Source of the DNA: Amphiscolops sp. MND2022 | Lineage: Eukaryota | DNA: 64,000 nucleotides | NCBI GenBank assembly: GCA_964187785.1 | Contig: OZ076417.1 | Span: 34,968,001 to 35,032,000 of the forward strand | Reading direction: 5' to 3' | Shown: piece after piece, positions 836 through 56,789 of the stretch | How the letters are laid out: every line of letters starts with the position of its first letter | Position numbering within the stretch: the stretch's first letter is position 1 | Made by a program: the position numbers and the translations under genes | The notes under the pieces: model-generated | Database searches by the model: none | The model's input: only the letters and a program-made list of their open reading frames with translations | What the model was told of the DNA's origin: nothing

Positions 836-923
836 GTTTGAACTAATAGTTCAAAATGTTACACTGCAATTAACAATTTCCCTTAACATTCATTTGGGTG
901 ACGAGTTTTCGTCTAAATGACAC

Positions 924-3479: not shown

Positions 3480-3835
3480 CTGAAAAACTGTTGAAAAACT
3501 ATATAGCCCAATACGGCAAAACAGATTAGAATGGACCCTGGAACAGTATTCACAAGTGAGGATTTTTAATCATTTTGTAGCCAGTTCCAAATTAAACACA
3601 TAACCTGCCCGGTACGCGATCACCGGGGAAATGGCAAATCGAGAGATTGATCCGAACGATTAACGAACGCCTAAGAACAAACAGAAACATTATCTTGAAA
3701 CGAAAAAAATCAAGCTTATCAGAAATCTTGTACGCGTTGCGAACGGGCCAAAAGGTGGACGGGAAAATCACCGTTCGAAAAATTATACGGACGGAAACCG
3801 AATACCGTAAAGAGCGATGTAGTCGAGCGAATAAA
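3480..3835 (+). pseudogene. Gypsy-type integrase core fragment
   Basis: IRMDPGTVFTSEDF*..IKHITCPVRDHRGNGK/IERLIRTINERLR carries the second D and the E of the DDE motif, with an in-frame stop and a frameshift. Confidence 0.8.
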
Positions 3836-5430
3836 AAATGTTTCACCATAATAAAAAGAAGCTCTTGCATGAATAATTAACAGCCTTCTCTTTACGTGAC
3901 ATGGGAGCCATATTTTCGTGACTAATATAATTTGAAACCAAGCAAATAGAAACGGATATGATCATAGACGTAACACTAAGCTCATTCGTTAAAGTAAACT
4001 AGTCAAAAAACTGGAAAAACTGAAGTTTAAAGGAATCTGCCAGATATTGATGACAAACCAGATTTTTTTAAATGCCAGAAATTTCTTAAACGTCATTCAA
4101 AAATGAGCAATATTTGCATGACACTACAACGGTATTTTAAAACTTCATTATTGACGTACCCCCTTTGGTAGTTGTTTTCTTACAGTTTAAGATATGTATG
4201 CGGTTTCCAAGACACATGTATAAACATATGTTCTTACTTTCCATAGTTGTTTTCATGGCCATCGAACAGTGGATGCTATTTTGGTGGAAACCAAGACAAT
4301 ATGCTTAAAGTGGTGGAAACCAGGACAATACAGTCAGATTTAAATATTGACATACTGCCTCCTTTAGTAGTTGTTTTCTTACAGTTTAAGATATGTATGC
4401 GGTTTCCACGACACTTGTATAATGATATGGTCTTACTTTCCATAGTTGTTTTCATGGCCATCGAACAGTGAACGCTGTTTTGGTGGAAACCAGGACAATA
4501 CAGTCAGAATTAAACCTTATTTCCCCTGCGGTCGCTTGGGGAGGGGGCATTTTGCGCAATTATTGACAAAATACAATTACCTTTGAAAAAGACGGCATGG
4601 TAAAAGCCATTTTTAATCAAGTAATTAGAACCAAACACTTTAATAAAGGTTTATTCTGACATCAAAGCAGTATTTCAACCAATAAGGGTTAACCAAAAAG
4701 TTTGGCTTTCAATTACATTTCTTCCATTGTTGCCAAACAAACTCAAACGATCCAGTCTCTATTCTTTTTGTCATCATTCAGTCTCTCTCCTCCTTCTGTT
4801 CTCATTCTGCCATCAATCAGTCTCTCTTACCAGGTCATCTGTACTCGGTCTCTCCGCAAACCCTCTTCTGCACCCAGTCTCTCTCCACAAATCATACATC
4901 TGTACTCATTTTCGCTTCTTGCTTCAATGGATAAACTCATCTCACAAAACGGCGAAAACGCAGGTATTAAGTTACATGGAAAGTCGCATACCCCACGCAA
5001 AGTTGGGTTTTGCTACTACTGCCAAGTGTTCTACCCCAACGGGAAAACAAAGTACGAAGTTACACAAAAAAAAACATGTACGATGAAGAGATCATTTTCG
5101 ATGAGACCGGACAATAATCTTCATGTTAGGCCTTTTAGGGTTCAACTCTAAACACAACCAGTACCCCTCAAATCAAATCCAGTACAGCAGAAACCCAAAG
5201 AAGATATTATAAACCCTCTCGAGCCACTCTTTCACTACTGTTTCAACAGAAGAAACTTATTGATTTGTTGATTTGTTCTTTTGATATATGATTTTGTATT
5301 TAGATGATCAATAGGTTTTATTCATATACAGTCATGTTCGGTACAAAGCTCTAAATCATTTGAGTTACCGTAGAGAGAAACGCGCAGAGAGAGGAAAATG
5401 AATATTATATTCCACAAATTTTCGTATTTT
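3835..5430 (-). repeat. Left inverted-repeat arm (R1 modules + ~870-bp unique segment)
   Basis: ~4090-5430 is the reverse complement of ~27590-28720 (paralogous ORFs 4702..5151+ and 27854..28309-). 3835-4020 is the reverse complement of ~20050-20250. Confidence 0.85.
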
Positions 5431-5640
5431 TTGAAGTTTCGAAGTTTTTCCCAGTTTTGAACAAACTGCCAGATCATCACAATCTGCCTTTTTGATGACA
5501 TGCTGCACTTTTGGTCATGGGTATCTCTATTCGTACTTTGGGATTTTTCGCGTCAATAAAAACAATTTCAATTGATAAAAAATTGTTTTAGTTCAAGTTC
5601 TTTTGCCTTTCTGAAAATGATCATGCAAATTGAATATAAT
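5430..5640 (+). repeat. Single unit of the ~232-bp satellite
   Basis: ccagttttgaacaaactgccagatcatcacaatctgcc matches the tandem units at 56790-57460. Confidence 0.75.
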
Positions 5641-5723
5641 TAAAATTATTAGAAAACGCCAAACAAAAAAATCATAAGTTTCCTGACGGGCAAGACAGAA
5701 AACTGAGATTTAAACCTTGAGAT

Positions 5724-6890
5724 TGTTATAGTCGAGCGCAAGGCGAAATAAGAAGAAATAGAAGAATGAAGTTAAGAATGAATTACGAATTGAATCTCGA
5801 TTCCAAGGCAACAGCAACTAAACTTTATGTTATGTATTTCATTCTAGCACTTGTTTACAGATGTTTGTAAATACTAGCATTTATTCACTTCTTTAGTACT
5901 TGCTCTTTTTGACACTCTATCACACTCTCCGTTTTATTGTAACACCTGGAGGTAGTTAGGTACATGTTAATAAATACTTGTAAGTTTCAATGTATTCATG
6001 GATTTTTACATGACTGAATTAGAGGAATACAGCTCGAAGGCTTTTAATGTTTATGTATTGCTAGGCCAAACAAATACACTATGACCACAAATAGAAGTTG
6101 TTTTTAGGGGGTATCTCCGCCTTTTGCTGAGGCGTTTTTTCATCTTCAACGCTCATGATGACATCCCGTATCGCTCTGTTAGTCGTCTGCGGCGAGTTTC
6201 TTTTTCCGGAGGTGTCCTAGAGAGTGAAGCCTTTACAGCCTTCTTCTTTTTCCCGGGATTCGTTGCTTGCTTTTCAGCCTTCTCTTGTTCAGGCATCGCA
6301 TCATCCTGGTTGTCCATCACTTCCTGAGGGGCTGTCATTTCCTGACGTACTGCCATTTCTTGAGGAACTGCCGTTTCCTTGGTGCTCGTCTCCACTGCCT
6401 CTGGCGTCACTTCTTCAGTTCCTCCTTCTTCGTATTGCTCCATTGATTTGCTGTTCTCAGTATTCTCGGTTTCTGTTGTTGTTGTTGTTGAGGCGTAAGT
6501 TGGAATGTACGTGTCGTCTTCCGACGATTCTTCCATTTCTTCCCATCTCGTAGAGGGGCCTGCCTCTTCTTCGTCCCTTTTTTGTTTCGAGCCTGTGCTG
6601 CTCTTCTTTCCCGAATGTGGTTTGGCCACGTCTCTTTTGGAATCAACCGTCTCCTTGTTCCTTTTCATTGGTAAGAAGGTTATGGTATGTAGTCTCTTTT
6701 ATAACCTTCCTGGACTTCTTTTTAACTTTTCCTTCTAACATGGATCCTCTAGTTCTCTCTCTGACGAGGATAGTCGAGTCGATCTCGTCTTCGAAATCCG
6801 ACGCATTGAACGTTACGCCTTGGTCTACTTCTGAAACACTTTTAAATTTGTCTACGATATTACTTTTTACCGTGTTAGGTTTTCGGCCGT
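5724..6890 (-). mobile_element. 3' end of a Gypsy-type LTR retrotransposon (integrase C-terminal tail, PPT, 3' LTR)
   Basis: EIDSTILVRERTRGSMLEG (6643..6909) is paralogous to VDSTVLIRERTRGSKLEG at 29955. Acidic tail ORF 6153..6668. Minus-strand purine tract aaaacggagag (5935-5925) abuts a TG..CA-bounded segment 5724-5924. Confidence 0.75.
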
Positions 6891-7790
6891 TTAAACTGTA
6901 AGAAAACAACTACCAAAGAGGGTAGTACGTCAAAATTGTAAAATCTAATATATCTTAATTTTGTCAAGGGAAATTTGTTCAACTTTCAATGACGTTTTAG
7001 AATATTCTGACATTCATATATATCTGGCTTAATATTGAAATCTGGCCGATTTTGATGAAAAGGTATATTTTCGAATGATTGGCAATTTTAGAGGCCGGCT
7101 TTTGTTTGCTCGAAAGGTATTATGGACATATTTTGTCTCTGACTTCTAAGAGCAACAAATTTTGGCTAAAATGCAATTAAAAAGTGAAACTAATTATGAC
7201 TAATTTTGGTCACAATCGTGAGTACTTTTTTACTCACGATTGGGACCAAAATATCACAGAATCTTTTTTCATTTTAGTATACTGAAAGGCCTCCTTTTTG
7301 TCCTCACGAAAGATTTTAGGAAAATATTTAACTCTGTATTCTATTAACAACGAAATTTGGCTAAAGAAGTTCTAGTCGCACGAAAACACTGAAAACATTA
7401 GCAACGAATATTTGTCTCTTTGACTTGTAATAAACACGAAATTCGTCTCAAAAGTCCTAGTCTCACGAAAACACTGATCAATCTTGCATGGCATTTTATG
7501 AAAACGTGGCATTTATTTAAAACTGTCTTGTCGTCAAAATATGGCAAATGTTTATCAACTGCCATTTTTCCATAAACATTCAACGGATGAGTTCGTTCTT
7601 GGATGGTCCTAAAACGACTGTGGAAAGTAAGACGATATCTTTATACATGTGTCGTGGAAACCACATACGTATCCTAAACTGTTAGAAAACAACTACAAAA
7701 GGTAGTACGTCGATATGTAAGTTTTAATATACCGTTTTAGTGTCATGGAAGTATTGCTCAATTTCGAATGACATTTTAGAATATTCTGAC
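6885..7790 (+). repeat. R1 array
   Basis: R1 core at ~6897 and ~7620, palindrome at ~7204. Abuts the ATG at 7791. Confidence 0.9.
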
Positions 7791-10700
7791 ATGTCTGATC
7801 GGGCTTGCTCATCGCAGTCACAAGAAGTGACCTGTGAGAAATGTGGGCAATTGTTGCCGAACAATAAAAGCAAGAACGAAGCACCGTCATACAAGAAGTA
7901 CAGAAAAAGCCCGACCAACCTAATTTCTTGTACCAATGGCACCTGTGATTATGTCACTGATCGGTTGTTCAGCCTCCAGCGTCATGAGAAGCAGTGTCCA
8001 GGGATGCCCTATGAGGACTGGAAGAAAAACGAAGTGACATGTGAGAATTGTGGACAGTTATTCACTAATAAGAAAAGTCGGATGCGTCATCAAAAGAACG
8101 CTAAATACTGTGTCAAGCAGAAAGCCAAGATTGATGCCGGCATAGAAGTGTCCATGTACAAATATCGTAAGTTATTTAACATTACTGAAGTCATTGAGTT
8201 TTTCGCTCGAATACTTATGATCTGGAAAATTAAAAAGGACCGTGTGTGGGCGGGGGTTTGGGAGGGGGATTAACAAAAAAGATCCATATCAAAATGCTTA
8301 CACATCTTTGTGTTTACACATGATGTTTTCCAGCAGCTGCAAAAGGTCGTCATAAAAGTCCTCATAATTGTCTGAGTTGTGGCAAGTTGTTCGCGTACCA
8401 GTACGTACTCCGGAATCACGTCGCAAGATCACTATCTTGCCAAGTAGCCCTAGCTCCAATTCCTGTTGATGTCACTTTCTCAGAGTATCCCCTATCTCCT
8501 TTTGGTACCACAGGGTACTTCGAATTTTGCGAGAGAATTCCTCTGGAATGTGGGTTTTCTTTCGACGAGTGGCAGGGTCCTCAGGAGAATCCAAGTGTGC
8601 ACTTAGGCTCTCTGTTGCAACACGGCATACCTCTGCTTTGGAAAGGTGGTGCAAATCACTGTCCCGGTATAAAGCTTCCCAAAGTTGACAGGAGTGCGCA
8701 TTTTCCCAGTGAAGTCCAGCAACTCCTGATGGCATCAAATTTGACTGATCCGGAGCAACAACTAGATGTGAAATCGGCAAAGATTGGCACTGTAAGCTTT
8801 TCATTATCTTTTCGCAAAAATACTGTTTCTTTTTAAAAGCCAAATTGTCTCGATTATTGGATTCATGTAGTGTTTTATCTATCATTATTTTCATCTTTCA
8901 CCATGATTATTATTTCACAAAAAATATTCATTACCTCTCTCCAATAAAACGATATGAATACTTCCTAGTTTCAGACGCAATCTCTATCCATACCGGAGTT
9001 CGTGGATGCTTTGAATTCATGTGGCCCCGATGACGTGAATTATCCATTGAATGTTATCGATATCAGGATTAAGCCAAAAGTGAGTTGGGAAACTTGATGA
9101 AAGAATAACCTCTTTTTTCAACTATTTTCATTTTTTTCAAATTAAGTTTTTGTGTTTAAGAAGCTGTACACAGTCCCAAAGATGGTAAGAGACAATTCCA
9201 TTGGGCACCTGGTTGAAAAACTCATTGGGAAGAATAGTCTCGAGCCTTATTCATGTGCCACTTCATATTATCTGCTGATTACGCAGGACTCAGCGCACAC
9301 AACTTGGCACCAAGACTTTTCAGCAACTTCTGTTTGCTATACTGTTCTTCGTGGCGAGAAAAGTTTTTTCTTGGTCAAGCCAACAAAAAAGAATATGGCA
9401 ATATTCGAGAAATGGTCAGATGCAGAAAATGACCAAACGTAAGATTTTTTTATTGAAACTAACGAAGAGTTTATAAAATTTACAAGAGTTTATTATAAAA
9501 TTAAAAATCAATTCTTTTGAACGAAACAATGGACACCTATAACTACAGAAACAGTGCATAAAAACTATTTTTGATTTATTTTGATGTTTTAGGCCCACAT
9601 TCTTCGGTGCGATCAATGAACTGGAAGAAGGATGCCTCCGACTCACTGTTACACCCAGTGACATTCTAGTTATGCCTGCCAACTACCTTCATTTTGTCCT
9701 CACGAAAGGTATTATGGTCTTCTTTAGTCTCTTTGAGTTATGAAAGATGTGTCAGTCGGTCTTTTTTGTAAATCGCTTTTACGTACACTTGACTAATTCT
9801 AAACGATTTTAGCTGACGATCACTTTCTAGTGTTTGATTCATTTTTTGTAACTTTGGCGTTTTTTCTGGTTATGGCACGATGCATAACTTTGCCACAACT
9901 TCATTCTTTCTTTTTCACTCGGCAGTGACAATACTCGTTTGCATGTTTTCCGCGTTCAATTTACACTTTCTCGCGATTTGATTGGTCCGTTTTTTCTCGC
10001 CAATACCGTCCGTTTAATCCGTTTGTTAACTTGTCTTCTACATTTACGGTGAACCAATCTTTGAATAATTCCTCAGATTGAATGATTGATCCTTTACATT
10101 AGGAAGGATGCCTTGACAAATAGTCAGCTATTCCCAGAGTTCTCCCCGGTGTTTGTACAATATGAAAATTGTACGGCAAAAGCCGATCTAATTTACATAA
10201 TTTACATGTCTACCACAACAGCTAATAATTATAATTAGTTTATGGAATAGTTCATTCCGAAATCTGTTAAAAATCGAGATGCGTACGAAATTGTTTTCCA
10301 GATATCATTTTCACACTGTTGGAGGACCGCGCCCAGTCCATTTTTGCTAGCGTTTGATAAACTGCCATTTTCTTAGATTGACATACAACGAATGAGCTCA
10401 TTCTTGAATGGTCCTAAAACAACTGTGGAAAGTAAGACCATATCATTATACATGTGTCGTGGAAACCGCTTACATATCTTTAACTGTAAGAAGACAACTA
10501 CTAAAGGGGGATGGATGGTTGTACGTCAAATTTTAAGTTTTAATGTACCGTTCTGGTGTCATGGAAATATTTTTCAATTTCGAATGGCATTTTGAAATAA
10601 TCTGGCATTTATTAATATCTGGTTAATCATTGAAATCTGGCAGAGTCCGTTAAAGTCTGACTTGCAATAACAAAAACATTGACTCAAAACTAATTTATAA

Positions 10701-11468
10701 GTGGAAATAATCATGAATAATTTTTGTCCCAATCGTGAGTAATATTTTTACTCACGATTGAAAACAAAAAATAATTTCATGTATTTCCTCAATCAAATCA
10801 ATACAGGTGACTCAATTGCAGTGGGGACCAATTTTTTGGCCCTTAGACACATCCCTATGATACGGGAAATGATGATCCTTGACCATTCGAGGACTTACGC
10901 GGATGTCAAGTTCCCTGATCTTCCCGAGCTGCTGGCATTGCTTCTTCTCACTGCAACAGAAAAAATTCAGAGAGCTTGTCCTTTCAAGTTTCGTTTATTC
11001 GACGCAGTGAAAACAATTGTTAATGAAAAGGCCGTCCAAGAGGTTTTTACAATTTGATAGGAAAAACTGTTCATTTTAAATTTCTAGTGTTTCACTCATT
11101 CAACCTATTTTCTTTTTAATTTGCAGATTCAACCACAGTTTTGCATGAACAAGTTGCGATTGCTTCTGGGCAGGAAACAACCGACCGGAACCCTCCAAGA
11201 TGCCGCAATCTCCAAAAAATATCTGGCAAGCGTCAGCATTAAATGCCCCGGTGACTCATACGCAACCATCCCCGATTACATTAACAATGTAGATGTTTTG
11301 AGTGAGTCGCGTGAGACCCGTGTTTCGACAGTTGAACTGCTGAGGGAGAATTCGCAAACTCCAAAATTTTGCGAAAACAAATTTCGACCTCATGCACTAC
11401 CGATAGTGGCTTCACTAAAAGGCATTAGAACTATCCCTAAAGAGGATGAACTCTTTGATATATGTTGA
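7791..11468 (+). CDS. C2H2 zinc-finger + JmjC histone demethylase-like protein (KDM2/KDM7-PHF8-like), 7 exons, ~636 aa
   Basis: Exons 7791-8166, 8334-8791, 8975-9079, 9161-9438, 9593-9708, 10807-11042, 11127-11468 have GT-AG ends, consistent phases and total 1911 nt without stops. Fingers: CTNGTC..RHEKQC, CENCGQLF..RHQ, CLSCGKLF..RNH. JmjC motifs: PLNVIDI, YYLLITQDSAHTTWHQDFSATSVCYTVLRGEKSFFLV, LVMPANYLHFVLT, GDSIAVGTNFL. The HxD..H Fe(II) triad and the 2-oxoglutarate Lys are present. True start uncertain because R1 abuts the ATG. Confidence 0.85.
9780..10330 (+). repeat. R2 dispersed repeat (intronic)
   Basis: gatttgattgg..gatgccttga..aatagtc..attcccag..gtttgtac is shared with 18560-19110. 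10190-10310 is the reverse complement of ~28835-28960. Confidence 0.7.
10360..10765 (+). repeat. R1 copy inside JmjC intron 5
   Basis: R1 core at ~10425 and a degenerate palindrome at ~10725-10760. Confidence 0.85.
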
Positions 11469-12366
11469 CTGTTTTTATTCACCTTTATTCTATTTATTTT
11501 CAAATTTGTCATTTAACAGAGTTTCTAGTTTTTTTTATATTTTGAAAGTTTAAATATAAGAAAGCGCAAATTAGAAAACGAAATGTGAATCCATTGAATT
11601 CACAAATTACCACATTTTCATTTCTGAATGGGACAAAAATAAGAAACGAGCAATCTGTTACTGTTGACGTTCAATCTTATTCTGTCTGAATGAGAAAAAT
11701 TGGCAAATGTATCTTTATTGGCAAAACTCAACGGAATGGGAAAAACTGAAATACTAAAATTCTCATACTATTTACTTGGTAAATATGTACTAGGAACAGT
11801 TTTTTCGGCACTTTACTTCTACTTTTTGGCGCCGTTTGTGTCACGAAATTCCCATTTTTGGCATTTTTCGACAACTTCGCAAAAAACAAGTAACAAGTCA
11901 TAAATTTGCAATTGAAAATCACAAATTCACATTGTTTTTTACAAAAAAAACTTGTTCAGAGTGTTTTTCGTCATGTTAGGCCGATCAGCCTCGAATGCAT
12001 TCAGGATAGAAAGAAACTAAAAAGATTGTCATTCACCACATGGTCTCAATACAATTTACAGTTGCTATCGAACTATCATTGTTTTCAACGTTAGTCAAGC
12101 TCTAGCTATAACAACCTCACAAAGGCGTAAATATCTATCTGCGAAGGGTCTGAAATACTTTTAACACAAACTTGTGGGAAAAACAGTAACACGCTAAACA
12201 ACCCGCCTAAAGATTCAAAAGAAGTTGAGCAGAAGATTTCAATTGGGGATAGCACAAAATACAGTAAACAACACATTCTTTGAGTCACATTTTCTTTACT
12301 CTATAACACACTATGAAATCGAGTTTGTAGAGGTACAGGACGTTGAGTTTGTCATAAAATTTTCAT

Positions 12367-14895
12367 TCATTGTAAACTGGTTTGATATAAGGATCGATAA
12401 CTATTCGAACACTTGAAGTGACCACGACATGCTACGAAGCTACATCGAATCATGAAAAACCCGAATTCACGATGTTCAGTGAACCTCAAAATTTTGATGA
12501 AGGCATCTTCACCTTCTTTGTTACTTGCGATCACGTCCCATCGTTTCCCAAGCACACTGTCCCATGACTGATTAGACCCTTTGAGGTCATTGCTGATATC
12601 CCCAGAAAACTTCACTGTTTCTTTTGAGGACGTCGTTTCAAAACCACACATTTTACGGGTCAACGGCGTCGCTGGAATTAATGATTTTGTCATTGAATGT
12701 TTTTTCTGGGCAAATCCAACCATCCTTTTGACTGCTGAAAACACCGCGAAAGCTTGGTTAATAGGATGAACTAGAGTGTGGATATTGAATTCTTCTATTT
12801 CGTCATCGATAACTTGAACTTCTAGTGCGGGCATGCGTACTTCAAAATCGGGGTTTGTTTCTCCTATCATTTTAACAAACGCCTTTCGTTTGCTGCAATC
12901 AAAGAACAGTTCTTTTACCTCAAACGTCGCGTTTGCATAGTTGGTGAGAGACCCAACGTTCAGGATGTTGTTATAGCATGGCGCATACTTCAACTCAACG
13001 TTCTCGTCACTGTGTGGTATCAAAGATATTGCATCCACAAAAGGTATTGTTTTTGGGGGGGCATCGCTTTTTTGGTACGGGAGGCCTGGAATCGACTATG
13101 GTTGGAGGTGATTCAAGTTCTTCGTTGGTGTCATCTGGAGCAGCCTCATCAGGCAAGTTTGCCCGTAATTGTCGATAAGAGACAAAAAATTCTTTTCCTT
13201 CGTCATCAACGACCATGCACTGTCGCAGGAACGGATCGTTGATCATCACTGTCGCAGTAACAACTGATCCGCAGCAAGTAATCTCGCAATTTTCGAAGTC
13301 GTCGATACAGTCACAATCTTCGTCATTTGATTGCCAAAAGAAAACTTCGTCATTGCGCATTAACTTCCTTGGATTGAAAGGCAAGCTTCTACCCCTTTTC
13401 TTGCTCAGCGATTCATCCAGTTTTTGGGCTTTTCTAATATTCCAACGTCGCTGAAAAAAGTTGAAAGTTAGCTCTCGCTTTTCAAATTTTTATCAACTTC
13501 AATAATGGGTTTTTTGAAAAAAATATTGTGGAGAATATCAACACGTGGATTGTCATTGAAATCTGGCAGATTTTGCTGAACTGCCATTTTTTCCTAAACA
13601 TTCAACGAATGAGCTTGTTCTTAAATGGTCCTAAAACGATTGTGGAAAGTAAGACCATATCTTTATACATGTGTCGTGGAAACCGCATACATATCTTAAG
13701 CTACAAGAAAACCATTACCAAAGGGGATAGATAGTACGTCAATATTTAAATCTGACTGTATTGTCCTGGTTTCCACCACTTTAAGCATATTGTCCTGGTT
13801 TCCACCAAAATAGCATTCACTGTTCGATGGCCACGAAAGCTACTGTGGAAAGTAAGACCATATCATTATACATGTGTCGTGGAAACCGCATACATATCTT
13901 AAACTGAAAGGAAACAAATACCAAAGGGGGTAAGTACGTCAATATTTAAAATCTAATATACCGTATTAGTGTAATGGAGCAATGACTCAATTTTGAATGG
14001 CGTTTTTTGGAATATTCTGGCAATTATTCATATCTGGCCTAATATTGAAATCTGGCAGATTTGGATAAAATGATACATTTTTGATTGATTAGCAATTTTA
14101 GAGGCCGGCTTTTGTTCGCTCGGAAGATATTATGGACATATTTTCAAAATAGTATGGAGCTAAGACAAGTTGTCTCTCTGACTTCTAATAGCAGCAAAGT
14201 TTGGCTAAAAATGCAAATCAAAAGTGAAATTAATCACGACTTATTTTGGTCCCAATCGTGAGTAATTTTTTTACTCACGATTGGGACCAAAATATCACAA
14301 AATCTTTTTAATTGGAATCATGATTTAACTTTCATTTTTTGAATTTCCATGAATGGAAGTAGAACTTCTCAATTTTTGATGTTAAATGCTAGCCCTATAA
14401 ATAGTATGTCAAGGTTTAAATCTCACTTTTCTGTCTTGCCCTCAGAAATTTTGATTTTTTTGTTTGGCATTTTCTAATATTTTGGCATTTTCGAATATCT
14501 GGCTTGTCGTCTAAATTTTGCAAACTTCGTTAAACTTCCGGTTTCTAGTTAGTTCACTCCAACGAATGAGCGTAGCGAGTTATTCAATTTATAATTCGAT
14601 TTGTGTATTTTTTGTCCTCGAAACCTGTTTAGCATTTCATCGGAACTATGGCCTAAGAAATAAGAGAATTGTGGAAAAGATTTCGAAAAAAGTTTTGAAA
14701 TGTTATATCAACCTCATCTTCCCTGTCGATTTCTGGCACTGTTATGTCAACTGTTTTTCTCGTAGCCCACTCCATCCATTTGATTCTGACACTCCAGTCA
14801 CTCATGATTGCAGTGACTTTTGCAAGCTCCCAAATAAATGTTAGAGGGTCCAGGATATGGACCACTTCGTTCGTTTCGAACTTTTGAAGAAGCAT
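12367..14895 (-). CDS. Multi-Tudor/Royal-family-like protein, 2 exons, one frameshift
   Basis: Exon 1 14895-14713 (FETNEVVHILD..WELAKVTAI..SVRIKWMEW; resembles the PHF20-type Tudor pattern) ends GAG|GTTGAT and joins in phase 0 to ttttttcag|CGA at 13450. A second barrel-like unit follows (ATVMINDP..CMVVDDEGKEFFVSYRQLR). A 1-nt shift in a C7/A5 run at ~13050 links ORF 13007..13384 to ORF 12367..13038. Confidence 0.55.
13530..14330 (+). repeat. R1 array inside the Tudor-like gene intron
   Basis: Two R1 cores (~13640, ~13845) and a palindrome at ~14243. Confidence 0.9.
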
Positions 14896-14959
14896 TACTG
14901 CGTTTAAAGGTGAATAGTTTGAGACTGACTGGAATAGTCACCTTATCAATAATTCAATT

Positions 14960-15300: not shown

Positions 15301-15452
15301 TGACGCTCAATTTTGGTTGATAGCAATTGTTTGATAAAGATTTGCTCAGTTTCTTTCAAACCATTTTCACGATCAGTAGCTTCCAGTCTTCTCGAATATA
15401 CATCACACTTCCTTTCAAATTTTTGAATTGCTTGGTTGTAACTAAATAACTA

Positions 15453-18400: not shown

Positions 18401-19403
18401 TAAAAGAAAGTACACGAAACTTTTTTGTGCTTAATACGATCTTTTTCTAAGTTGATAATTTTTTGTATATTTCCATTTTTTTTTCATTATTCGCTCTGAC
18501 GTAAACTCTACCGATTCTTCAAGAATTCAAATTTCTATCTTTTTTGTTACAATAATCCATTTTAGTCAAATTGGCGTTTGAATTCAATTTGGCGTTTTGA
18601 GATAAAATAGCACGTTAAGTAATTTCAGCAGAATTTTCACTATTTACACACTCGTTGAATACTGTCAATACGCGTCTAGTTGTATTTCGCTTACCGCTCT
18701 GGCTTTCTCGCAATTTGATTGGCTCGCTTCGTTTCAAACGTTTTGAAGTTCGTCAATAACGTTTTTCTAATCCGCCTGTGAATTCTTCTACTACGTTTAT
18801 AGTAAACCTATCTCTAAACATCTCTTCTAATTTTATAGATGTTCCATTACAATGGGATGGATGCCTTGATGAATAGTCCGCCATTCCCAGCGTTCGCCCC
18901 GGAGTTTGTACCACATTAAACTTATATGGTAATAGACGATCTATTCAACGTGTTAAACGGCTTGATGTCGTTTTATTTGCACTCAGAACGCTTTGTAAAG
19001 CCTTGTGATCAAATACGACTCCAAATTGTGTACCGCATACATAATTTTTGAAATGATCCCACGACAGCTAGTAACTCCAATTCATTTTTGGATTATTTCA
19101 TTCAAATTCTGTTAAAAATTGTGGGTTTTTGTAAGGTGTTCCTGTAACTTCTTTGTTCCAGGTGAAAGGTCCGGGCGGAGACTGATCAACGCTTCCTCCG
19201 AGATATGTGAAAGTCACCCAAAAAATCTATGTTTGGGACGCCTTATTAACCACTGTTCCAAAGATGCAAACATAAAGCAAACTGACATAGTGCTTTATGA
19301 CGAGTCCCGAGTTTGCTGCTTCAGGGCTATAAGAGATATAAGCCCTTTCGAAGAATTGAAATTCGATTACGAGGACCCAACAGCGCGGTCCCTTTTTTCG
19401 TGA
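15453..19403 (+). CDS. Ser/Thr-rich N-terminus + degenerate tyrosine-recombinase-like region + SET domain (SETD8/PR-Set7-like), 4 exons, one frameshift
   Basis: Exons 15453-16188, 17197-17426 (phase-1 join is exact), ~17473-18231 (acceptor uncertain) and 19162-19403. SET motifs GRGVVST, LDYHG, LGRLINHC and EELKFDY are all present, with no post-SET cysteines, as in SETD8. One base is missing near 19175 (ccgggcgg); one extra G restores EVKGPGRRLINAS. Confidence 0.8.
16300..17100 (+). repeat. R1 array inside SET gene intron 1
   Basis: R1 cores at ~16630 and ~16830. 16400-17100 is closely matched by ~59200-59830. Confidence 0.9.
18560..19110 (+). repeat. R2 dispersed repeat inside SET gene intron 3
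   Basis: Collinear similarity to 9780-10330. Confidence 0.7.
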
Positions 19404-19589
19404 AAGGTGACTTGCTGACAAATATCTTCCTGTGCTTTTTCAAGAGTCTATTTATTCCAAACACTTTTTTTTGTTTTTTAAAGCTACTCGTTTTGTTCAC
19501 TTTTCGAATAATTATCAGATATATATGAACCAGACTTTCAACCAGAGGATCAGAATACATGTAAGTTCAGTCAATTATCCATAGCACCC

Positions 19590-20250: not shown

Positions 20251-20338
20251 TGTCCCTCTTTTTGTTAACGTGTCGGTTCTTCTTAACTCCTAATCTCAAC
20301 TTTTTTCATCAAAGCGTCATTCTGCAAATATATTTCAG

Positions 20339-23300
20339 ATAGTCACTGTGACCTTCATACATCTTCATCACTAGTTGAGTTGAATACAACGTTGTTGAAA
20401 TCTCATATCAACGCACTTTTGATGGACCCCTTAGCACTTTGGAATGCCCATTCTGTACAAGTCGACAAAAATTTGCTGTTTATCGACTGCAAAATGTTCG
20501 AAGTCATGGCCGAGAAACGATTCACCAACAAATACAGAAAATTCGAAAAGATCATTGACGATGCATTCGCCGGGTGTGGGTTGAATACCAAAGACTTACT
20601 CCGGAGAATTCCCATGAAAGGTCAAAGCAAACCGACTGTGTGTATAGCAGTGAGTAATTTTTTTTCTAATCATCATTTTTTGCAAATGTCTATCTTTGTC
20701 ATATTTGGCGCGATAATACTTTTTTCTAATTCGTGCTTCGCTGGCGTTTTGTATCCAATTCGTTAATTGAGTGTTTCGCTTCAAAGTCGGTTAAAAATCT
20801 GGATGCGTACGCAATTGGTTTTCAATTGTTTTCTTCATTGTGTTGTAATACCGCCCCTAATCCTTGTTTGCTTGCATCGCAAATGATTCGCAACATGCGG
20901 TTTCTTTTATATTGCTAAAAATACATTTACTAAATACATTACTAAAACATTTACATATCCACCACAAAAACCGTTTCCGAAAAAATATTCTTTACCGGGA
21001 AAAATTGCGATGTTTCTAATCTTCCGAGGGTTCAAGGATTTCCAATGGACCGACGCAAGGAAGAGATTTGTGGAATGCTTTGTCCCTCGATATTTGATTC
21101 CTTACGAAGATACTTTCAATTTTCCTCCTCTTGTAACACCAACCTTGAATCCCCTTGCAATACGTACCTCGAATCTGTCTGCGCCACCAACAATGGTCCT
21201 TGAAACAATGGATTCACATACACCACCAACAATGGTCCTTGAAACAATAAATTCGTTTGCAACACGAAGAATGGACCTTGGAACAATGGATTCGCATACA
21301 CCACCAACAATGATCCTTGAAACAATAAATTCAATTGCAACACCAACAATGGACCTTGGAATAATGGTTTCGCATGCACCACCAACAATGGACCTTGAAA
21401 CAATGGATTCCCATGCACCACCAACAATGGACCTTGAAACAATAGATTCGCATGCGCCACCAACAATGGACCTTGAAACAATGGATTCGCATGCACCACC
21501 AACAATGGACCTTGAAACAATGGATTCCCATGCACCACCAACAATGGACCTTCAAACAATGGATTCGCATGCACCACCAACAATGGACCTTGAAACAATG
21601 GATTCGCATGCACCACCAACAGTGGACCTTGAAACAATGGATTCGCATGCACCACCAACAATGTACCTTGATGCAGCGACAAGTCCAAATCCTAAAATGA
21701 GGAGAACAAAAAAATTGAACAAAGAAGCAGCCACTTGTTTCTGGAAAAGGGTCATCGATGAGGCCAACGATAATAAAGAAATTGGGTTCAATGAGTTTAT
21801 AGAACAAGTGAAAGACAATATGATTAAACGGAAATACCAGGGATTCACAAAGAAGGAAGAAGAGAATGTGGTGAAAATTCTAATCGAGCGTCTTTTTGAG
21901 AATCGAGGATCGACCAAGGAAATCAGTCACATTCTATCACTTACTGCTCAAACTGGAAATATAGAGGAAGTCATAAAACTTATCAGATCGAAACTTTCGG
22001 TAGTTGGCTTGGGATACAACGTAGTACCCTGTATACGCTTGATCAAGAAATCGACAGCTGAAATCCAGACCTATTTTGTTTCACTATGCCATCCCGAAAG
22101 AACGTTCTCCGGTTTCCGATGCGATCTGATAAAATTTGTTGAGCTGGCCGCATACCTGCTCGGAATGTATGATTTATGTGGTTTGAGAATTGATATCTGG
22201 GGCGACGGTTGTGAAATTGGAGGCCTGGAAACAACCCGTTTTGCCTTTCGAGTGTTTTCGGAAAAAATTAGTTGCCAGTCATCAAGTTCGGTGTTCTGTT
22301 TTGCATCGTATCGAGGAAAAGACAGCCGATTCGCGATGGAACAGAACCTTGGACCAACTATAGCTGGTGATCAAAGTTCGGGTTGGCTCTACCAGAAAAC
22401 GTCGGAGTTGTCAGATCGTGGAGTTAAACTAACCTACAGTGGAGATACACCAGTTTTGCTACGCCTGATACTGGGAATTTCCTGTGAAACGAATTTCAAA
22501 TCAAAAATGCCACTTCATATTCCTGATAATAGCTTTTTGCCAACAAATTGCCACCCTGAAACAGGTCTGAGAACCGATCTCAAGATACCTTTCCGAGAAG
22601 AACTGCCAAAAACATCCCTTGTTTATTTCCAAGACGTGCGATGTATATGCCCTGACCCGACGCACATGATCACCAGATGTGTTGAAAACGACTTGAGGAG
22701 AGTGGCGCAGAAAATAATCACTGACAAGTATCCCGATTATGGCCCCTCACTCAAAGCCTTTGAAGAAAATCTTACACGACGTGATGCAAAAAGGCCATAT
22801 TTCCAGTTCAATGTGAACACAAAACTAGGTTCTGGTGTTGGTACTGTAAACAGTGTGTCATTAGCCGGAAGTAATGCCCTATCTATTATAGCAGAAAAAG
22901 AGGAATTGGCTGGCGCAAATGATTGTTCAATAGGGAATCTTTTTGAAGATGTATGGGATCCCAAAAACGATGTTGTTATTGGGAGTGAATCTGCTGCTAG
23001 TGCACAAATACTAAAACAACTTCTCCCAGAACTTTTCGATAAGCCTCACCCTAGTGACAAGACATCCGCCAATCTCTACATGTCGAAGACAGATGCATGT
23101 GAATTGCTGCGCTCCAGCCTGAACCGCTGTGCAATTCTCTTGAGATCTGAGCAGTTTGACGCCCAATGCTACAAAAAATGGGCTGAAATATATTATCAGA
23201 CAACCATTTTGTTATTTGGTGAATGCTCATTGACACTATATAAGTTGAAGCTCGCAATGATGCCACAGATTGTAGAAGGAGGGTTTGTGGAAAGACCTTT

Positions 23301-24387
23301 TGACCACATGTGCGAAGGGCTTGAAAAATCCAATCATCACGCAAATCGCTATTTCCAGACAAAAACCATGCGTGGTGGCTTACCATAAAGATCCTCTTTT
23401 CCTGAAATTGTCATCTTCATTTGGAAAGTTCCTCCGTGCATCAATTGAATTGAAAACAAAGAAGTATGAATGTTTGGAAATATCTGAAATACTTGAGAAA
23501 CTTGTTGATGATTTGGATGCCAAATACCCCGGACCAACATACCTCGAAATTTGCAAGACCCCAATTTCCTCGACTTCTCTTGCAATCGGGAAGTCGCATC
23601 CCGATTCTCAATTTTTGAGTGGTATGAGGTTCTTTTCAATTGGAAGATTAGGTGTAGTCGATAGGTGTAGTAGATTTCGTTAACGAAGGATGTTCTGATT
23701 AAACTCATCAACGAAATGGGGGGCATATTCATTGAACACGATCAAGCAAGCAGACACCCTCATGAAGACACATTCACGACTGCCTAATTGCTTCGTTCTG
23801 GTCAAAGACGAAGAAGACCTAGTAATCGCCACAGGCGCTGTGCAAGAAATTGAAGACCTGAAAAAGAAAAGGCCGCTGGCGAAAAAAATAAAGCGAAGTA
23901 AGTCAAGTCTTTCCACGTCCCAGTCTTCAGATTCGGACAGTCAATACCCATCATCGCAATTCACAGCAAGACAGAAAAAGAAACCGCTCAATACTCACAA
24001 ATTGCTCAAAAATTTGCCCAAGGAGGTCTAACTTTTTTGAAGAAAAATTTTCTCATGGATGTCAAAAAAGTAGTTACGTTGTTAGACCCCAAAGATTACA
24101 CCATTGCCCCCGGAAGTAATTTTCGTCGAGCCAGAGTAAATGATATGAGACCACTCTTCCTTGATCAAATATCAGGCAAAAAATCAAATGAGAATATATC
24201 GGCTGTGGCTTATCTCAAACGATACAGAAATGGACAAATAGATTACCAAAACTCTTTTTCGAGAATGATGATGACACTTTTGCCGGAAAAATTGACAACA
24301 TTGATGATGATGACGACGACGTCGATGAAGAATGTTCTCAGATCACTTTGTAGACTCCAGAGTTCAACAAAAAATGGGACACCGTAA
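20339..24387 (+). CDS. RAG1/Transib-like DDE transposase-fold protein with 13-aa repeats and a frameshifted C-terminal BRCT-like domain
   Basis: Exon ~20339-20649 (donor GTGAGT), then the 792-aa ORF 21010..23388. Motifs align by eye to RAG1 core: IWGDG (ESCDG, D600), YSGDT (GYDEK, D708), PDPTH (IDALH), LYKLKLAMMP (NYFHKTLAHVP), CEGLEKSNH (SEGNESGNK, E962). Downstream frames give LSGMRFFSIG..LTKDVLIKLINEMGG..CFVLV..FLKKNFLMDV..LLDPKDY (BRCT-like), with about 4 frameshifts after 23385. Confidence 0.65.
21184..21672 (+). repeat. Coding minisatellite, 39-bp unit x ~12.5 (PPTMDLETMDSHA)
   Basis: Twelve full in-frame units plus one partial in ORF 21010..23388. Confidence 0.95.
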
Positions 24388-24639
24388 TTATGTTGTTGAT
24401 ATTTGTGTTCATATCTAGCGATGCATTACTATTTCGAAATAATACTATTAGAATTCTGTTCTTGAATTTGCGTATCTCTGTGATAAACATAACTCCAATT
24501 CAAGTTAGTTGTAAGAGACTATATTTTTCATACTCTGCTGAAGATCAGATACAGTGAAGATACGATACCAACACATCGTACCCCGTTACGTCGCGAGAAG
24601 TAGAGGTTATGATAAGCCATGGTAAACCAATCGAAAAGT

Positions 24640-27490
24640 TGGAGTTAACCAAAATCTGCCAGTTTTTATTTAAGAGCAAAACAATAAAAAATGCCACAAA
24701 TTTACCAAACTCCATTCAAAAATGAACAATAGTTCCATGACACTAATACGGTATTTTAAAATTTACATATTGAAATATTATCTCTGGTAGTTGTTTTCTT
24801 ACAGTTTAAATTATGTATGCGGTCTCCACGACCCATGTATAATGATATGGTCTTACTTTCCACAGTAGCTTTCGTGGCCATCGAACAGTGAATGCTCTTT
24901 TGGTGGACACCAGGACAATATGCTTAAAGTGGTGGAAACCAGGACAATACAGTCAGATTTAAATATTGACGTACTATCTTACCTTTGGTAGTTGTTTTCT
25001 TACAGTTTAAGATATGTATGCGGTTTCCACGACACATGTTTAAAAATATGGTCTTACTTTACATTGTCGTTTTGGGGCCATTTTAAAAACGAACTCATCC
25101 GTTGAATGTTTACGGAAAAATGACAGTTCATCAAAATCTGCCATAATTTAATGACAAGACAGTTATGGATAAATGCCATGTTTTCATAAAATGCCATGCA
25201 AGATTGATCAGTTGTTTCGTGAGACTAGGATTTTTGAGACGAATTTCGTGTTTATTACAAGTCAAAGAGACAAATATTCGTTGCTAACAGTCTCGCAGCG
25301 CCTTGTTAAAGGGCCCAAAGACTAATAACAGAACTAATGATCTGTCTAGTTAAAGAGAGATTTGATGAGTGAATACTTTCAACTGACGCAACTGTATTTT
25401 ACGTTTAGACCATATCGCGAATGATCTTTCACTCTTTTTCTTTTTCTACGGTTGTTTTTACTAACAATCTGCTAGCGATCTCGAGGTTTGTTCTAGAGCT
25501 AGCCTTTTGCCACATGGACCAAATTTAGTCATCAATAATTTCACGTTTGAATTGCATTTTTAGTCAAAAGTTGTTGCTATTAAAAGTCAGAGACAAAATA
25601 AGTCCATTATATCTTTCGAGCGAACGATTCCCGGCCTCTAAAAACGCTAACCAATCAAAAATGTACCATTTCATCAAAATCTGCCAGATTTCAATAACAA
25701 GTCAGATATAAATGAATGTCAGAATATTCTAAAACGTCATTCAAAGTTGAGCAAAATTTCCATGACAATATTAAGGTATATTAGATTTTAAATATTGACG
25801 TACTATATCCCCTTTGGTAGTTGTTTTCTTACAGTTTAAGATATGTATGCGGTTTCCACGACACATGTATAATGATATGGTCTTACTTTCCACAGTAGCT
25901 TTCGTGGCCATCGAACAGTGAATGCTATTTTGGTGGAAACCAGGACAATATGCTTAAAGTGGTGGAAACCAGGACAATACAGTCAGATTTAAATATTGAC
26001 GTACTATCCCCTTTGGTAGTTGTTTTCTCACAGTTTAAGATATGTATGCGGTTTCCAGGACACATGTATAATGATATGGTCTTACTTTCCAAAGTTGTTT
26101 TCATGGCCATCGAACAGTGAATGCTATTTTGGTGGAAACCAGTACAAAATGCTTAAAGTGGTGGAAACCAGGACAATACAGTCAGATTTGCATAATAACG
26201 TACTACCCTTTGGTAATGGTTTTCTTGTAGTTTAAGATATGTATGTGGTTTCCATGACACATGTATAAAGATATCGTCTTACTTTCCACAGTCGTTTTAG
26301 GACCATCCGAGAACGAACTCATCCGTTGATTGTTTATGGAAAAATGGCAGTTGAAAAAAATTTGCCATATTTCGATGACAAGACAGTTTCAAATAAATGC
26401 CACGTTCCCAAAAAATGCCATGCAGAAATGTTTTCAGTGTTTTCGTGTGACTAGGACTTCTTTAGCCAAATTTCGTCGTTATTAGAATACAGAGTTAAAA
26501 TATGTCCCTAATATCTTTCGTGAGGAAAAAAAAGAGGGCTTTCAGTATACTAAAATGAAAAAAGATTGTTACATTTTTATCCCAATCGAGAGTAAAAAAA
26601 TATTCACGAATGAATAATTTCACTTTTGAATTGCATTTTTAGTCAAATTTCGTTGTTATTAGAAGTCAGACAGTTAAAATATGTCCTTAATATCTTTCGT
26701 GAGGACAAAAGGGAGGCCGTTCAGTATACTAAAATGAAAAAAATTTTGTGATATTTTGGTCCCAATCGTGAGTAAAAAAATTACTCACGATTGGGACCAA
26801 AACTATTTGTGATTAATTTCACCTTTGAACTACTTTTTCAGCCAAAATTCGTTGCTATTAGAAGTTAGAGAGACAAAAAGTGTCCTCAATATCTTTCGTG
26901 CGGACAAAAGCCGGCCTCTAAATTGCTGACTATTCGAAAATGTACCATTTTATCAAAATCGGCCAGATTTCAATTTTAAGGCAGATATCAATAAATGCCA
27001 GAATATTCTAAAACGCCAATCAAAATTGAGTGATTGTTCCATGACACTAATACGGTATATTAAGATTTAAATTTTGACATATACTCCCTCTGGTAGTTGT
27101 TTTCTTACAGTTTAAGATATGTATGCGGATTCCACGACACATGTATAAAGATATGGTCCTACTTTCCATTGTCGTTTTAGTACCATTCAAGAACTAGCTC
27201 ATTCGTTAAATGCTTTTGAAAAACAGGCAGTTGACAAAAATTTGCTAAATTTTGATGACGAGGTAGTTATAAATATATGCCATGTTTTCTTAAAATGCCG
27301 TGCAAAACTGTTTCTGTGTTTTGGTGAGACCAAGACCTTTTTAGCCGAAATTCGTGAAATGCTATTGGAAAATGGCAGTTGATAAAAATCTGCCACGTTT
27401 TGACAAAAAGACAATTCTGAATAAATGCCTTTTTTTATAAATTGCTTGCAAACTTGTTTTCAATGTTTTGTTTTCATTAGACTAGGACTT
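24640..27490 (-). repeat. Large R1 array in reverse orientation
   Basis: At least six reverse R1 cores (~24830, 25030, 25870, 26070, 26270, 27150) and a palindrome at ~26756. ~24700-25800 is an inverted copy of ~58450-59500. Confidence 0.9.
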
Positions 27491-27589
27491 TGTTAGCCAA
27501 ATTTACTGGCTCTAGTTTTACTTTTTGTCCGCTTCCAAAGCTTCTCTGTTGGCTAACGCCCTCTTTTTGAAAAACACGAATATTTGTGT

Positions 27590-28720
27590 TATATAATATT
27601 TATTTTCCTCTCTCTGCGCGTTTCTCTCTCTACGGTAACTCAAACAATTTAGAGCTTTGTACAGAAAATGACTGTATATGAAAAAATTAATTGATCATTT
27701 AAATACAAAAATATATATATATATCAAAAGAACGAATCAACAAATCAATAAGTTTCATCTGTTGAAGCAGTGAAAGAGTGGCTCGAGAGGGCTTATAATA
27801 TCTTCTTTGGGTTTCTGCTGTACTGGATTTGATTTGAGGGGTACTGGTTGTGTTTAGAGCTGAGCCCTAAAAGGCTTAACATGAAGATTATTGTTCGGTC
27901 TCCAGATGTCATCGAAAATGATCTCTTCATCGTACGTGTTTTTTCGTGTAACTTCGTACTTTGTTTTCCCGTTGGGGTAGAACACTTGGCAGTAGTAGCA
28001 AAACCCAACTTTGCGTGGGGTATGCGACTTTCCATGTAACTTATTAACTGCGTTTTCGCCGTTTTGTGAGATGAGTTTATCCATTGAAGCAAGAAGCGAA
28101 AATGAGTACAGATGTATGAATTGTGGAGAGAGACTGGGTGCAGAAGAGGGTTTGCGGAGAGACCGAGTATAGATTACCTGGTAAGAGAGACTGATTGATG
28201 GCAGAATGAGAACAGAAGGAGGAGAGAGACTGAATGATGACAAAAAGAATAGAGACTGGATCGTTTGAGTTTGTTTGGCAACAATGAAAGAAATGTAATT
28301 GAAAGCCAAAGTTTTTGGTTAACCCTTATTGGTTGAAATACTGCTTTGATGTCAGAATAAAATTCGAATAAAGTGTTTGGTTCTAATTACTTGATTATAA
28401 ATGGCTTTTACCCTGCCGTCTTTTTCAAAGGTAATTGTATTTTGTCTGTAATTGCGCAAAATGCCCCCTCCCCAAGCGACCGCAGGGGAAATAAGGTTTA
28501 ATTCTGACTGTATTGTCCTGGTTTCCACCAAAATAGCATTCACTGTTCGATGGCCACGAAAGCGACTGTGGAAAGTAAGAACATATATTTATACATGTGT
28601 CTTGGAAACCGCATACATATCTTAAACTGTAAGAAAACAACTACCAAAGGAGGTAGTACGTCAATATGTAAATTTTGATATACCGTATTAGTGTCATGGA
28701 AAAATTGCTCAAGTTTGAAA
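27590..28720 (+). repeat. Right inverted-repeat arm
   Basis: Reverse complement of ~4090-5430, e.g. ttcctctctctgcgcgtttctctctctacggtaactcaa versus ttgagttaccgtagagagaaacgcgcagagagaggaa. Confidence 0.85.
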
Positions 28721-56745: not shown

Positions 56746-56789
56746 TTCAAGTGGTAGACTGAACAAACATAATATTATGCACTACTTTT

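Follow-up and report, generated by a model that had tools for sequence, protein, structure and literature searches.

What kind of locus places a transposase gene among genes that resemble those of histone-modifying enzymes? This question is raised by a 64,000-nucleotide stretch of DNA from Amphiscolops sp. MND2022 (contig OZ076417.1, positions 34,968,001 to 35,032,000), which is referred to in its entirety as the window. It carries genes for a zinc-finger (ZnF)-JmjC protein, a Tudor-like protein, a SET protein, and a transposase. An earlier note had taken positions 3835-28720 to be a mobile element of about 25 kb that is bracketed by long inverted arms and supplied with its own writer, eraser, and reader of histone marks. 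We conclude that the window very probably holds a decayed and incomplete copy of a large, multi-copy DNA transposon family of the cut-and-paste type, in which a transposase with a RAG1/Transib fold is accompanied by element-encoded ZnF-JmjC, SET, and Tudor-like genes. The same transposon family is also represented by the beginning of a second copy (W2) and by a 441-bp derivative. The window sequence is eukaryotic, AT-rich, and filled with repeats, has two assembly gaps (31231-31430 and 56230-56429), and contains stop-to-stop open reading frames (ORFs) that translate to recognizable gene pieces between 7.7 and 24.4 kb.

Four genes that recur together, and short inverted ends

The transposase has 30 close homologues, and 536 homologues at E of at most 1e-3 were found among 1.84 billion cluster representatives, with clusters reaching 128 member sequences. 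In one assembly, the same four genes are grouped around the transposase in at least four diverged lineages, with transposase identities of 44-95%. The window lineage comprises the window, L001, copy B (L002/L005/L012), L008, and L009/L010, which are 85-96% identical at the DNA level. The four genes flank the transposase in this lineage (window, L001, L002/L005, L008, and L009/L010) and likewise in L003, L011, and L004. Copies of the window lineage are collinear with the window over many kilobases and vary in their deletions (of the SET gene in copy B and of most of the transposase gene in L010), in their nested retrotransposons, and in their surroundings.

The other loci are more distant. Their transposases are 62% (L003), 64% (L011), and 44% (L004) identical to that of the window copy, and all four genes lie within 13-17 kb of the transposase in an arrangement unlike that of the window. 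The order is JmjC(+), Tudor-like(-), SET(+), transposase(+) in the window; SET(-), Tudor-like(+), transposase(+), JmjC(-) in L003 and L011; and Tudor-like(-), transposase(+), SET(-), JmjC(-) in L004. The genes are multi-copy, and the notion of a large mobile-type element present at many loci is borne out by these copies, by the number of homologues, and by inverted termini. Co-occurrence of the four genes was found at many loci, but the fixed order that the earlier note had anticipated was not, because both order and orientation vary by lineage. Similarly, the copies have different surroundings as foreseen, but no clean target-site duplications.

The termini were recognized through the compact locus L011, where inverted matches between the two flanks consist of a single 22-bp pair. 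The true ends of the element are a 21-nucleotide inverted repeat that starts with CATTACAGTGCA and reads CATTA(C/G)AGTGCA plus a less conserved tail. This 21-mer occurs seven times in all DNA examined, each time exactly where the homology between copies stops. An inverted pair at positions 175 and 17870 of L011 encloses all four genes in an apparently complete copy of 17.7 kb. Right ends lie at position 18651 of L001 and position 19031 of L010, and the left end of W2 lies at 56433-56453 of the window, right after the second assembly gap. The 441-bp non-autonomous derivative (36817-37257, + strand) has both 21-nucleotide termini and sits, flanked by G runs, inside a long terminal repeat (LTR) retrotransposon. 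Positions 36935-37258 match the final 325 bp of the L001 and L010 elements, and the last ~100 bp of the element show conservation between L011 and the window lineage.

W2 extends on the + strand from 56433 to 64000, where the window ends, and consists of the terminus, subterminal CGTGGAATCC motifs, a 232-bp tandem repeat, R1 arrays (built of units of ~200 bp), and a 0.65-kb block. The left subterminal region of the first copy (W) occupies 1-3112 (+ strand), with the 0.65-kb block at 911-1595 and R1 arrays at 1633-2694. Positions 1-3112 are 96-98% identical to 60673-64000, a segment that begins 4.2 kb inward from the terminus at 56433, and by this distance the first copy should have its left end ~4.2 kb before window position 1. 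We infer a full length of ~30 kb for the element in the window lineage.

In L009, the 0.65-kb block is found again upstream of the ZnF-JmjC gene, and L001 has it in inverted orientation on the downstream side of the transposase gene. Its edge (911-921) was considered as a terminus and rejected, since it lacks inverted ends, occurs as a tandem pair in L009, and is missing on the right side of L010. Just left of the 441-bp derivative, at 36803-36824, a head-to-head terminus-like pair is made up of CTGTAATG, which is the terminus start in reverse complement, a run of seven G, and CATTACAG; an earlier insertion or excision at this G run could have left it behind.

A transposase with a predicted RAG1/Transib fold

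The transposase gene (20422-24384, + strand) was assigned by an AlphaFold model, Foldseek, and the homologue P0001. Its first exon lies at ~20422-20763 and is followed by 20887-23385 and by frameshifted pieces up to 24384. A small ORF at 20287-20763 corresponds to exon 1 and aligns with the N-terminus of the uninterrupted homologues P0014 and P0007. The window copy has an 833-codon ORF followed by at least two frameshifts, and the intact homologue P0001 has 1119 amino acids. Because the C-terminal part of the window copy is spread over three reading frames and the corresponding part of L001 is a single 1119-codon ORF, the window gene is a pseudogene.

Structural modeling provided the evidence for the class of this enzyme. 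An AlphaFold model of P0001 residues 270-870, made with a 44-sequence alignment, has a mean predicted local distance difference test (pLDDT) score of 85.5; an earlier model of the full-length transposase with 16 sequences reached only 39 and was unusable. In a Foldseek comparison of the new model with the PDB, RAG1, HzTransib, and BbRAGL account for every one of the first 49 ranks (best E 3.5e-6), and the first other match, at rank 50, is the hAT transposase Hermes. The alignments span 550-750 columns at ~11% identity, with template modeling (TM) scores of 0.32-0.54, most of them near 0.45. As modeled, then, the transposase shares the multi-domain architecture of the RAG1 core with RAG1 and Transib, in line with the RAG1/Transib-like assignment first made from the letters of the sequence. 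It would add to this fold a very divergent, BRCT-bearing branch that is missed by sequence profiles.

Candidate catalytic motifs in the window transposase are DIWGDG (22192-22209), CPDPTH (22648-22665), and CEGLEK (23311-23328), all on the + strand. The conserved acidic residues of these DxxGD, CPD, and EGxEK motifs are spaced by ~150 and ~220 residues and constitute a candidate DDE triad, placed by motif. The catalytic triad of RAG1 is D600, D708, and E962. The short motifs around the candidate residues resemble those of RAG1, which is a lead.

A BRCT region lies C-terminal to the core. Pfam recognized BRCT_2 in 16 of 44 homologues and BRCT in 6 of 44 (best E 1.2e-7), and when C-terminal segments alone were used, BRCT_2 was found in 10 of 25 and BRCT in 2 of 25. 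The family profile weakly touches the BRCT domains of DNA ligase IV and RAP1, and a PDB search with profile A6, made from the transposase C-terminal region, returned no BRCT chain. P0001 and the window copy fell below threshold when searched individually. The BRCT domain once ascribed to the window gene can therefore be maintained for its relatives; in the window copy, this region is frameshifted.

Could the transposase instead belong to another superfamily that lacks a solved structure, such as CMC (CACTA/Mirage/Chapaev), and match RAG1 merely through a shared general architecture? The terminus start CATTACA resembles CACTA-type ends, and subterminal repeat motifs and large multi-gene elements are typical of CACTA. 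Target-site duplications are 2-4 bp long for CMC and 5 bp for Transib/RAG, and a 2-bp duplication fits both end pairs here (TT for L011 and GG for the derivative), which could be due to chance. The sequence searches detailed below also gave no match to RAG1. However, the Foldseek alignments reach well past the RNase H core, their top 49 matches include no other superfamily, none of the 44 alignment members matched the Pfam CACTA transposase families, and the catalytic-residue motifs resemble those of RAG1 (a lead rather than a test). We consider a CMC-type enzyme distinctly unlikely.

Several further observations concern the transposase gene itself. A 39-nucleotide tandem repeat of 12.6 copies (21180-21671, + strand) encodes a 13-amino-acid repeat in the N-terminal part of the protein. 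Short in-frame tandem repeats occupy this part in every lineage (window 21180-21671, L004:10225-10369, and L011:7705-7843), with units of 39, 42, or 87 nucleotides whose sequence and copy number also vary by lineage. In L003 (5743-11526), the transposase gene is tandemly duplicated inside one element copy, with a period of 2.85 kb and 99% identity. A scan of Joint Genome Institute (JGI) metagenomes yielded 11 transposase relatives on contigs of 1-7 kb, too short to reveal neighboring genes.

ZnF-JmjC, SET, and Tudor-like genes

The three accessory genes were, like the transposase gene, found to be real at the positions first assigned to them. The ZnF-JmjC gene (7791-11465, + strand) has about six exons. 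Two encode fingers (~7791-8270 and 8324-8833), four encode the JmjC domain (9146-9439, 9585-9740, 10743-11054, and 11088-11465), and an R1 array lies within an intron at 10353-10640. The finger exons display a C-x2-C...H-x3-5-H/C pattern and a weak Pfam zf-C2H2 match (E 5e-4); a PHD finger is not present in these N-terminal exons, which have fingers of the C2H2/C2HC type instead. When compared with the PDB, the first JmjC exon matched PHF8 (E 4e-12), KDM7A (2e-11), PHF2 (2e-9), and KDM2A (1e-6), and the PHF8/KDM7-like assignment is thus supported. The Pfam Cupin_8 match is weak, and Pfam scores of single exons are under the cut-off because introns split the domain. The HxD...H iron ligands and the Tyr and Lys that bind 2-oxoglutarate are kept in four lineages, within the motifs WHxD, Y..L.GEK, and LHxVLT.

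The SET gene (15453-19400, + strand) has exons at 15453-16193, 17181-18261, and 19116-19400, with R1 arrays at 16325-17093. Its product combines a C-terminal SET domain with an N-terminal part that has no recognized domain. The Pfam SET match exceeds its cut-off and has an E value of 2.6e-7 for the last exon (19116-19400) and of 7e-11 and 3e-10 for the uninterrupted orthologues in L003 and L011, respectively. The best solved relative is KMT5A/SETD8 (E 5e-6), ahead of MLL1 (2e-3), as the KMT5A-like label had implied. The catalytic motifs RLxNH (with its NH) and F/YDY (with its Tyr) are kept in four lineages. An additional YR-like label for this gene had to be abandoned, as no tyrosine-recombinase Pfam match was obtained for the N-terminal ORFs of the SET gene from the window, L001, L004, or L011.

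The Tudor-like gene (12370-14937, - strand) is frameshifted in the window copy. Its pieces are 12370-13489 and an upstream exon, 14731-14904, that carries the royal/Tudor-like domain; the ORF is intact in L001 (330 amino acids). The protein has an N-terminal domain of ~60 amino acids that is conserved across all lineages and a conserved C-terminal domain of ~200 amino acids (alignments A4 and A5). The protein has no Pfam match, and profile searches of the PDB gave no significant match. For the N-terminal domain, the best profile match was 2ldm, a PHF20 Tudor domain (E 0.59, non-significant), and the C-terminal domain had no match at all. To judge from its sequence, the N-terminal domain weakly has the look of a royal-family barrel. 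Of the original Tudor assignment, a conserved N-terminal domain stands, and the family membership is tentative.

In the window lineage, an R1 array (13550-14309) separates the royal-domain exon from the next exon of the Tudor-like gene. The same parts are contiguous in L003, L011, and on the short contig L006 from a public run, and therefore the array either created or occupies the intron. L006 and L007 (2.3 and 3.7 kb, run ERR12380049) carry uninterrupted ORFs for a Tudor-like protein (469 amino acids) and a transposase (1052 amino acids). These are 38% identical to the L001 Tudor-like ORF and 50% identical to the window transposase ORF, respectively, which suggests that they are expressed relatives in another organism. 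A RAG2-like gene was not seen; in a search limited to ORF pieces, the conserved neighboring genes and ORFs gave no kelch or PHD matches.

Selection and the case for element-encoded genes

Between L003 and L011, coding DNA alone can be aligned. The ratio of nonsynonymous to synonymous substitution rates (dN/dS) for this pair is 0.078 for the transposase core, 0.04-0.09 for SET exons, 0.03-0.17 for JmjC exons, 0.06-0.09 for zinc-finger exons, and 0.11-0.14 for the Tudor-like gene, all rough values because synonymous sites are saturated. Among close copies, dN/dS is ~1 for the window versus copy B and 0.25-0.97 for the window versus L001. Constraint along the lineage combined with neutral decay of single insertions is the pattern expected of genes encoded by a transposon, and this pattern argues both against functionless passengers and against a host gene cluster. 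Purifying selection shows that the accessory genes matter to the element, and it says nothing about what they do.

A transposon could be real and nonetheless carry SET, JmjC, and Tudor-like genes as passengers that, as in Pack-MULEs, were captured from a host and do nothing for the element. In favor of this possibility, the nearest solved structures belong to ordinary host enzymes (KMT5A and PHF8/KDM7), and the genes of the window copy are partly broken. However, lineages with transposases of only 44-64% identity still have these genes, their dN/dS values are as low as that of the transposase, their catalytic residues are intact, and the JmjC protein has its own zinc-finger N-terminus rather than the PHD finger of PHF8/KDM7. 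Passengers without a role thus appear very improbable.

Several findings weigh against a transposon of RAG1/Transib type. The transposase core has no Pfam match (in the window ORF, 17 single homologues, or 44 alignment members) and no PDB sequence match (by phmmer and two profiles), and the link to RAG1 therefore rests on predicted structure and short motifs. All seven termini begin with CAT, not the CAC of Transib and of recombination signal sequences (RSSs), and an A-rich nonamer block is not seen at the expected distance after the terminus. No clean target-site duplication accompanies L011 or the derivative: the L011 flanks, GCCTT and TTACT, show no 5-bp duplication and match over at most 2 bp (TT), and the runs of 7 and 8 G that border the derivative are compatible with any duplication length up to 7. 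No right end was found for the window copy, and it does not lie in the window. Among the fetched loci, there was no empty site or polymorphic insertion, nor an empty site for the derivative. The genomic relatives that were fetched all come from one assembly in the European Nucleotide Archive (ENA), ERZ25074608, and the sole hint of expression is the intron-free ORFs on short contigs of one public run, which are assumed to be transcripts.

The missing duplication and empty site and the single source assembly, together with a 3-kb duplication whose copies in the window are 60.7 kb apart, would also be compatible with a host cluster of chromatin-regulator genes that was amplified by segmental duplication beside an unrelated transposase, with no mobile unit at all. 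Such a cluster does not readily account for at least four lineages in which gene order varies and the same four genes always lie within 13-17 kb, or for noncoding DNA that cannot be aligned between lineages where coding DNA is strongly constrained. Close copies that evolve neutrally, with frameshifts, deletions, and nested retrotransposons, likewise speak against it, as do terminal inverted repeats, a 441-bp derivative inserted in an LTR retrotransposon, and protein clusters of 50-130 members. We regard the host-cluster explanation as even less probable than that of passengers, and continue with a multi-copy transposon family that encodes all four genes.

Inverted arms, repeat arrays, and integrase-like genes

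The long inverted arms that had been proposed as element ends do exist. The left arm (4338-5431, + strand) and the right arm (27570-28673, - strand) are inverted copies of 1.1 kb with 93% identity, and the four genes lie between them. However, they behave as an internal repeated module. Past both arms, homology between copy B and the window continues, leftward to 2158-2694 and rightward, over a 12.5-kb LTR-retrotransposon insertion, to at least 30517. On one side of copy B, two arms in inverted orientation and an integrase-zinc-finger-like gene between them make up a separate, compact unit of ~5 kb. Arms are absent at these positions in L001, L008, and L009, and no such arms occur in L003, L004, or L011. 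Because homology runs past both boundaries of 3835-28720 and a different, 21-nucleotide terminus marks where it stops, a ~25-kb element ended by the arms is the least probable explanation of all.

R1 arrays lie between and inside the four genes, in intergenic regions and some introns, just as had been reported, and a long block of R1-type arrays (24625-27570) follows the transposase gene. The subterminal regions contain repeated CGTGGAATCC motifs and the R1 units contain a related motif, CGTGGAAACC; together these occur 24 times in the window versus 0.11 expected, an enrichment that in part just reflects the repeated units. A second motif, GATTGGNACCAAA, includes an inverted CCAAT box and occurs 15 times in the window versus 0 expected, with the same reservation, and is found again in L003 and L011. 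The array motif also returns in the arrays of L003 and L011, even though the surrounding noncoding DNA is unalignable, and L004 has arrays of its own without these motifs. Conservation across lineages suggests that the motifs are functional; we can only guess at their role, which might be to bind the transposase or the zinc-finger protein or to act as promoter modules.

Within one type of R1 unit lies a perfect palindrome with a 21-bp stem and a CCAAT-like GATTGGGACCAAA in each arm. It occurs at 2235-2281, 2435-2481, 14245-14291, 26755-26801, 58759-58805, 63122-63168, and 63323-63369. The GATTGGGACCAAA motif is present in L003 and L011 both as single occurrences and in direct arrays.

An integrase-H2C2-like gene with an acidic tail (29226-30539, + strand; Pfam Integrase_H2C2 E 3.4e-10) lies outside the former right bound of 28720, in a region shared with copy B (L002 and L012) to at least 30517. 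A remnant with only the C-terminal part and acidic tail (5431-6894, - strand) was identified by tblastn against 29871-30539 and L005. Further H2C2-only gene copies are L001:17-331, L008:11988-13542, L009:11492-12875, L005:17166-18421, and L010:16901-17281. The position of this gene varies: the window and copy B have it near the arms, and L001, L008, and L009 have it between the JmjC and Tudor-like genes. Paralogues share only 50-63% identity, and no copy occurs in L003, L004, or L011. Either an extra gene particular to this lineage or a small nested element could account for these copies.

Neighboring features

The LTR retrotransposon that hosts the 441-bp derivative (34707-44134) has 611-bp LTRs that are 97.5% identical and a zinc-knuckle gag ORF on the - strand. 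A marked skew of G over C and T over A extends across 36-44 kb. In copy B, a 12.5-kb LTR retrotransposon (L012:5828-18335) is inserted in the integrase-like gene; its LTRs are unusually long (2.4 kb, 98.6% identical), and its gag is of the BEL/Pao type (DUF1759), which points to an animal source. A retrotransposon Pol probe found no match in the window, and a search for RNA genes found none. Farther right, 47876-56074 contains three to four tandem copies of a ~2.05-kb unit (95-99% identical) whose ORFs have a PAN/apple domain (PAN_1, E 4e-5), and a 165-bp tandem array (49331-50343) lies between PAN units. These units probably form a host gene array.

Possible roles and relation to known systems

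How might such an element use its chromatin-type genes? The transposase would excise and insert the element through the 21-nucleotide ends. By analogy with their relatives, the ZnF-JmjC and SET enzymes would act on lysine methylation, either on the chromatin of the element itself or at its breaks. KMT5A writes H4K20me1, and PHF8/KDM7 enzymes remove H4K20me1, H3K9me1/2, and H3K27me2; the candidate marks would be H4K20me1 and H3K9me1/2, those of the closest relatives. This activity might serve to resist heterochromatin silencing or keep the element expressed, to license or time cleavage, or to steer double-strand-break repair. Perhaps the enzymes work at donor and target sites rather than on element chromatin, and the repeat arrays might recruit element proteins. 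BRCT domains work at DNA breaks, and the hairpin mechanism of RAG-type enzymes leaves double-strand breaks.

In a joint reading, a lysine-methyl mark (H4K20me1, for example) would be set on the element or on its targets by the KMT5A-like writer and the PHF8-like eraser and read by the Tudor-like protein, and the BRCT-bearing transposase, as a new deep branch of the RAG1/Transib group, would couple cleavage to repair. We advance this scheme tentatively and think it unlikely to be true. Vertebrate RAG1 is coupled to a histone mark through RAG2. If the joint reading were true, the family would be an independent counterpart of the coupling between the RAG2 PHD finger and H3K4me3 in V(D)J recombination. 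If the enzymes are active, the family would offer a natural system for studying how a mobile element edits its own chromatin against silencing or guides break repair, and it would also bear on the origin of chromatin coupling in RAG-type nucleases.

As far as the searchable literature allows us to say, a set composed of a RAG1-fold transposase, a histone writer, an eraser, and a candidate reader has not been described for any transposon, which agrees with the earlier note in that no named class with these genes was found. Full-text searches turned up no Transib/RAG-like element, giant or otherwise, with JmjC, SET, BRCT, or Tudor genes (Repbase-type catalogues are outside this search). Neither Transib nor histone enzymes come up in a 2019 review of giant eukaryotic transposons, and a broad DDE survey does not list accessory domains of this kind. 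Transposons with epigenetic enzymes are known for DNA methylation; none was found described with a histone writer, an eraser, and a candidate reader under joint selection.

Among known systems, CACTA/En-Spm (CMC) elements are similar in being large and multi-gene, with short ends and subterminal motif arrays, and CATTACA is close to CACTACA. They differ in that the window family has no Pfam CACTA transposase match and that the fold search prefers RAG1 and Transib. The host enzymes KMT5A/SETD8 and PHF8/KDM7A/PHF2 are the closest solved relatives of the element SET and JmjC proteins and share their catalytic motifs. However, this relationship is distant (E 5e-6 and 4e-12, on parts), and the element genes are repeat-encoded. 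The element JmjC protein has C2H2/C2HC fingers rather than a PHD finger, and the element SET protein has a long N-terminal region of no recognized type that distinguishes it from KMT5A.

Transib and RAGL/ProtoRAG (PMC1131882, PMC7204232, PMC10629977) resemble the window family in the predicted multi-domain transposase fold (RAG1, HzTransib, BbRAGL) and as DDE-type enzymes with short terminal inverted repeats, the DDE residues of the window element being candidates. Transib ends and RSS heptamers start with an invariant CAC, followed by a spacer and an A-rich nonamer, and Transib/RAG targets are GC-rich with a 5-bp target-site duplication (PMC1131882). The G-rich site of the 441-bp derivative fits such targets. 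In contrast, the window family has no sequence-level match to these systems, its terminus begins with CAT and has no A-rich nonamer, and its size is at least 17.7 kb rather than 3-4 kb. It also has a C-terminal BRCT region and three conserved chromatin-type genes, with no RAG2-like gene seen among the ORF pieces searched.

SETMAR joins a SET methyltransferase with a DNA transposase (PMC6326780). It is a single-copy host fusion that includes a domesticated mariner transposase, whereas in the window family SET is encoded separately from the transposase, on an element present in many copies. Fungal DNA transposons (KDZ and others) carry TET/JBP dioxygenases (PMC12730594), some retrotransposons carry DNA methyltransferases (PMC5890265), and Copia retrotransposons carry a methyl-CpG-binding domain (PMC6673714). 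The window family is like these elements in keeping epigenetic enzymes or readers, presumably to manipulate its own silencing. Those elements act on DNA methylation and usually have one captured gene or domain, whereas the window family would combine a putative histone-lysine writer, eraser, and reader on a transposon with a predicted RAG1 fold.

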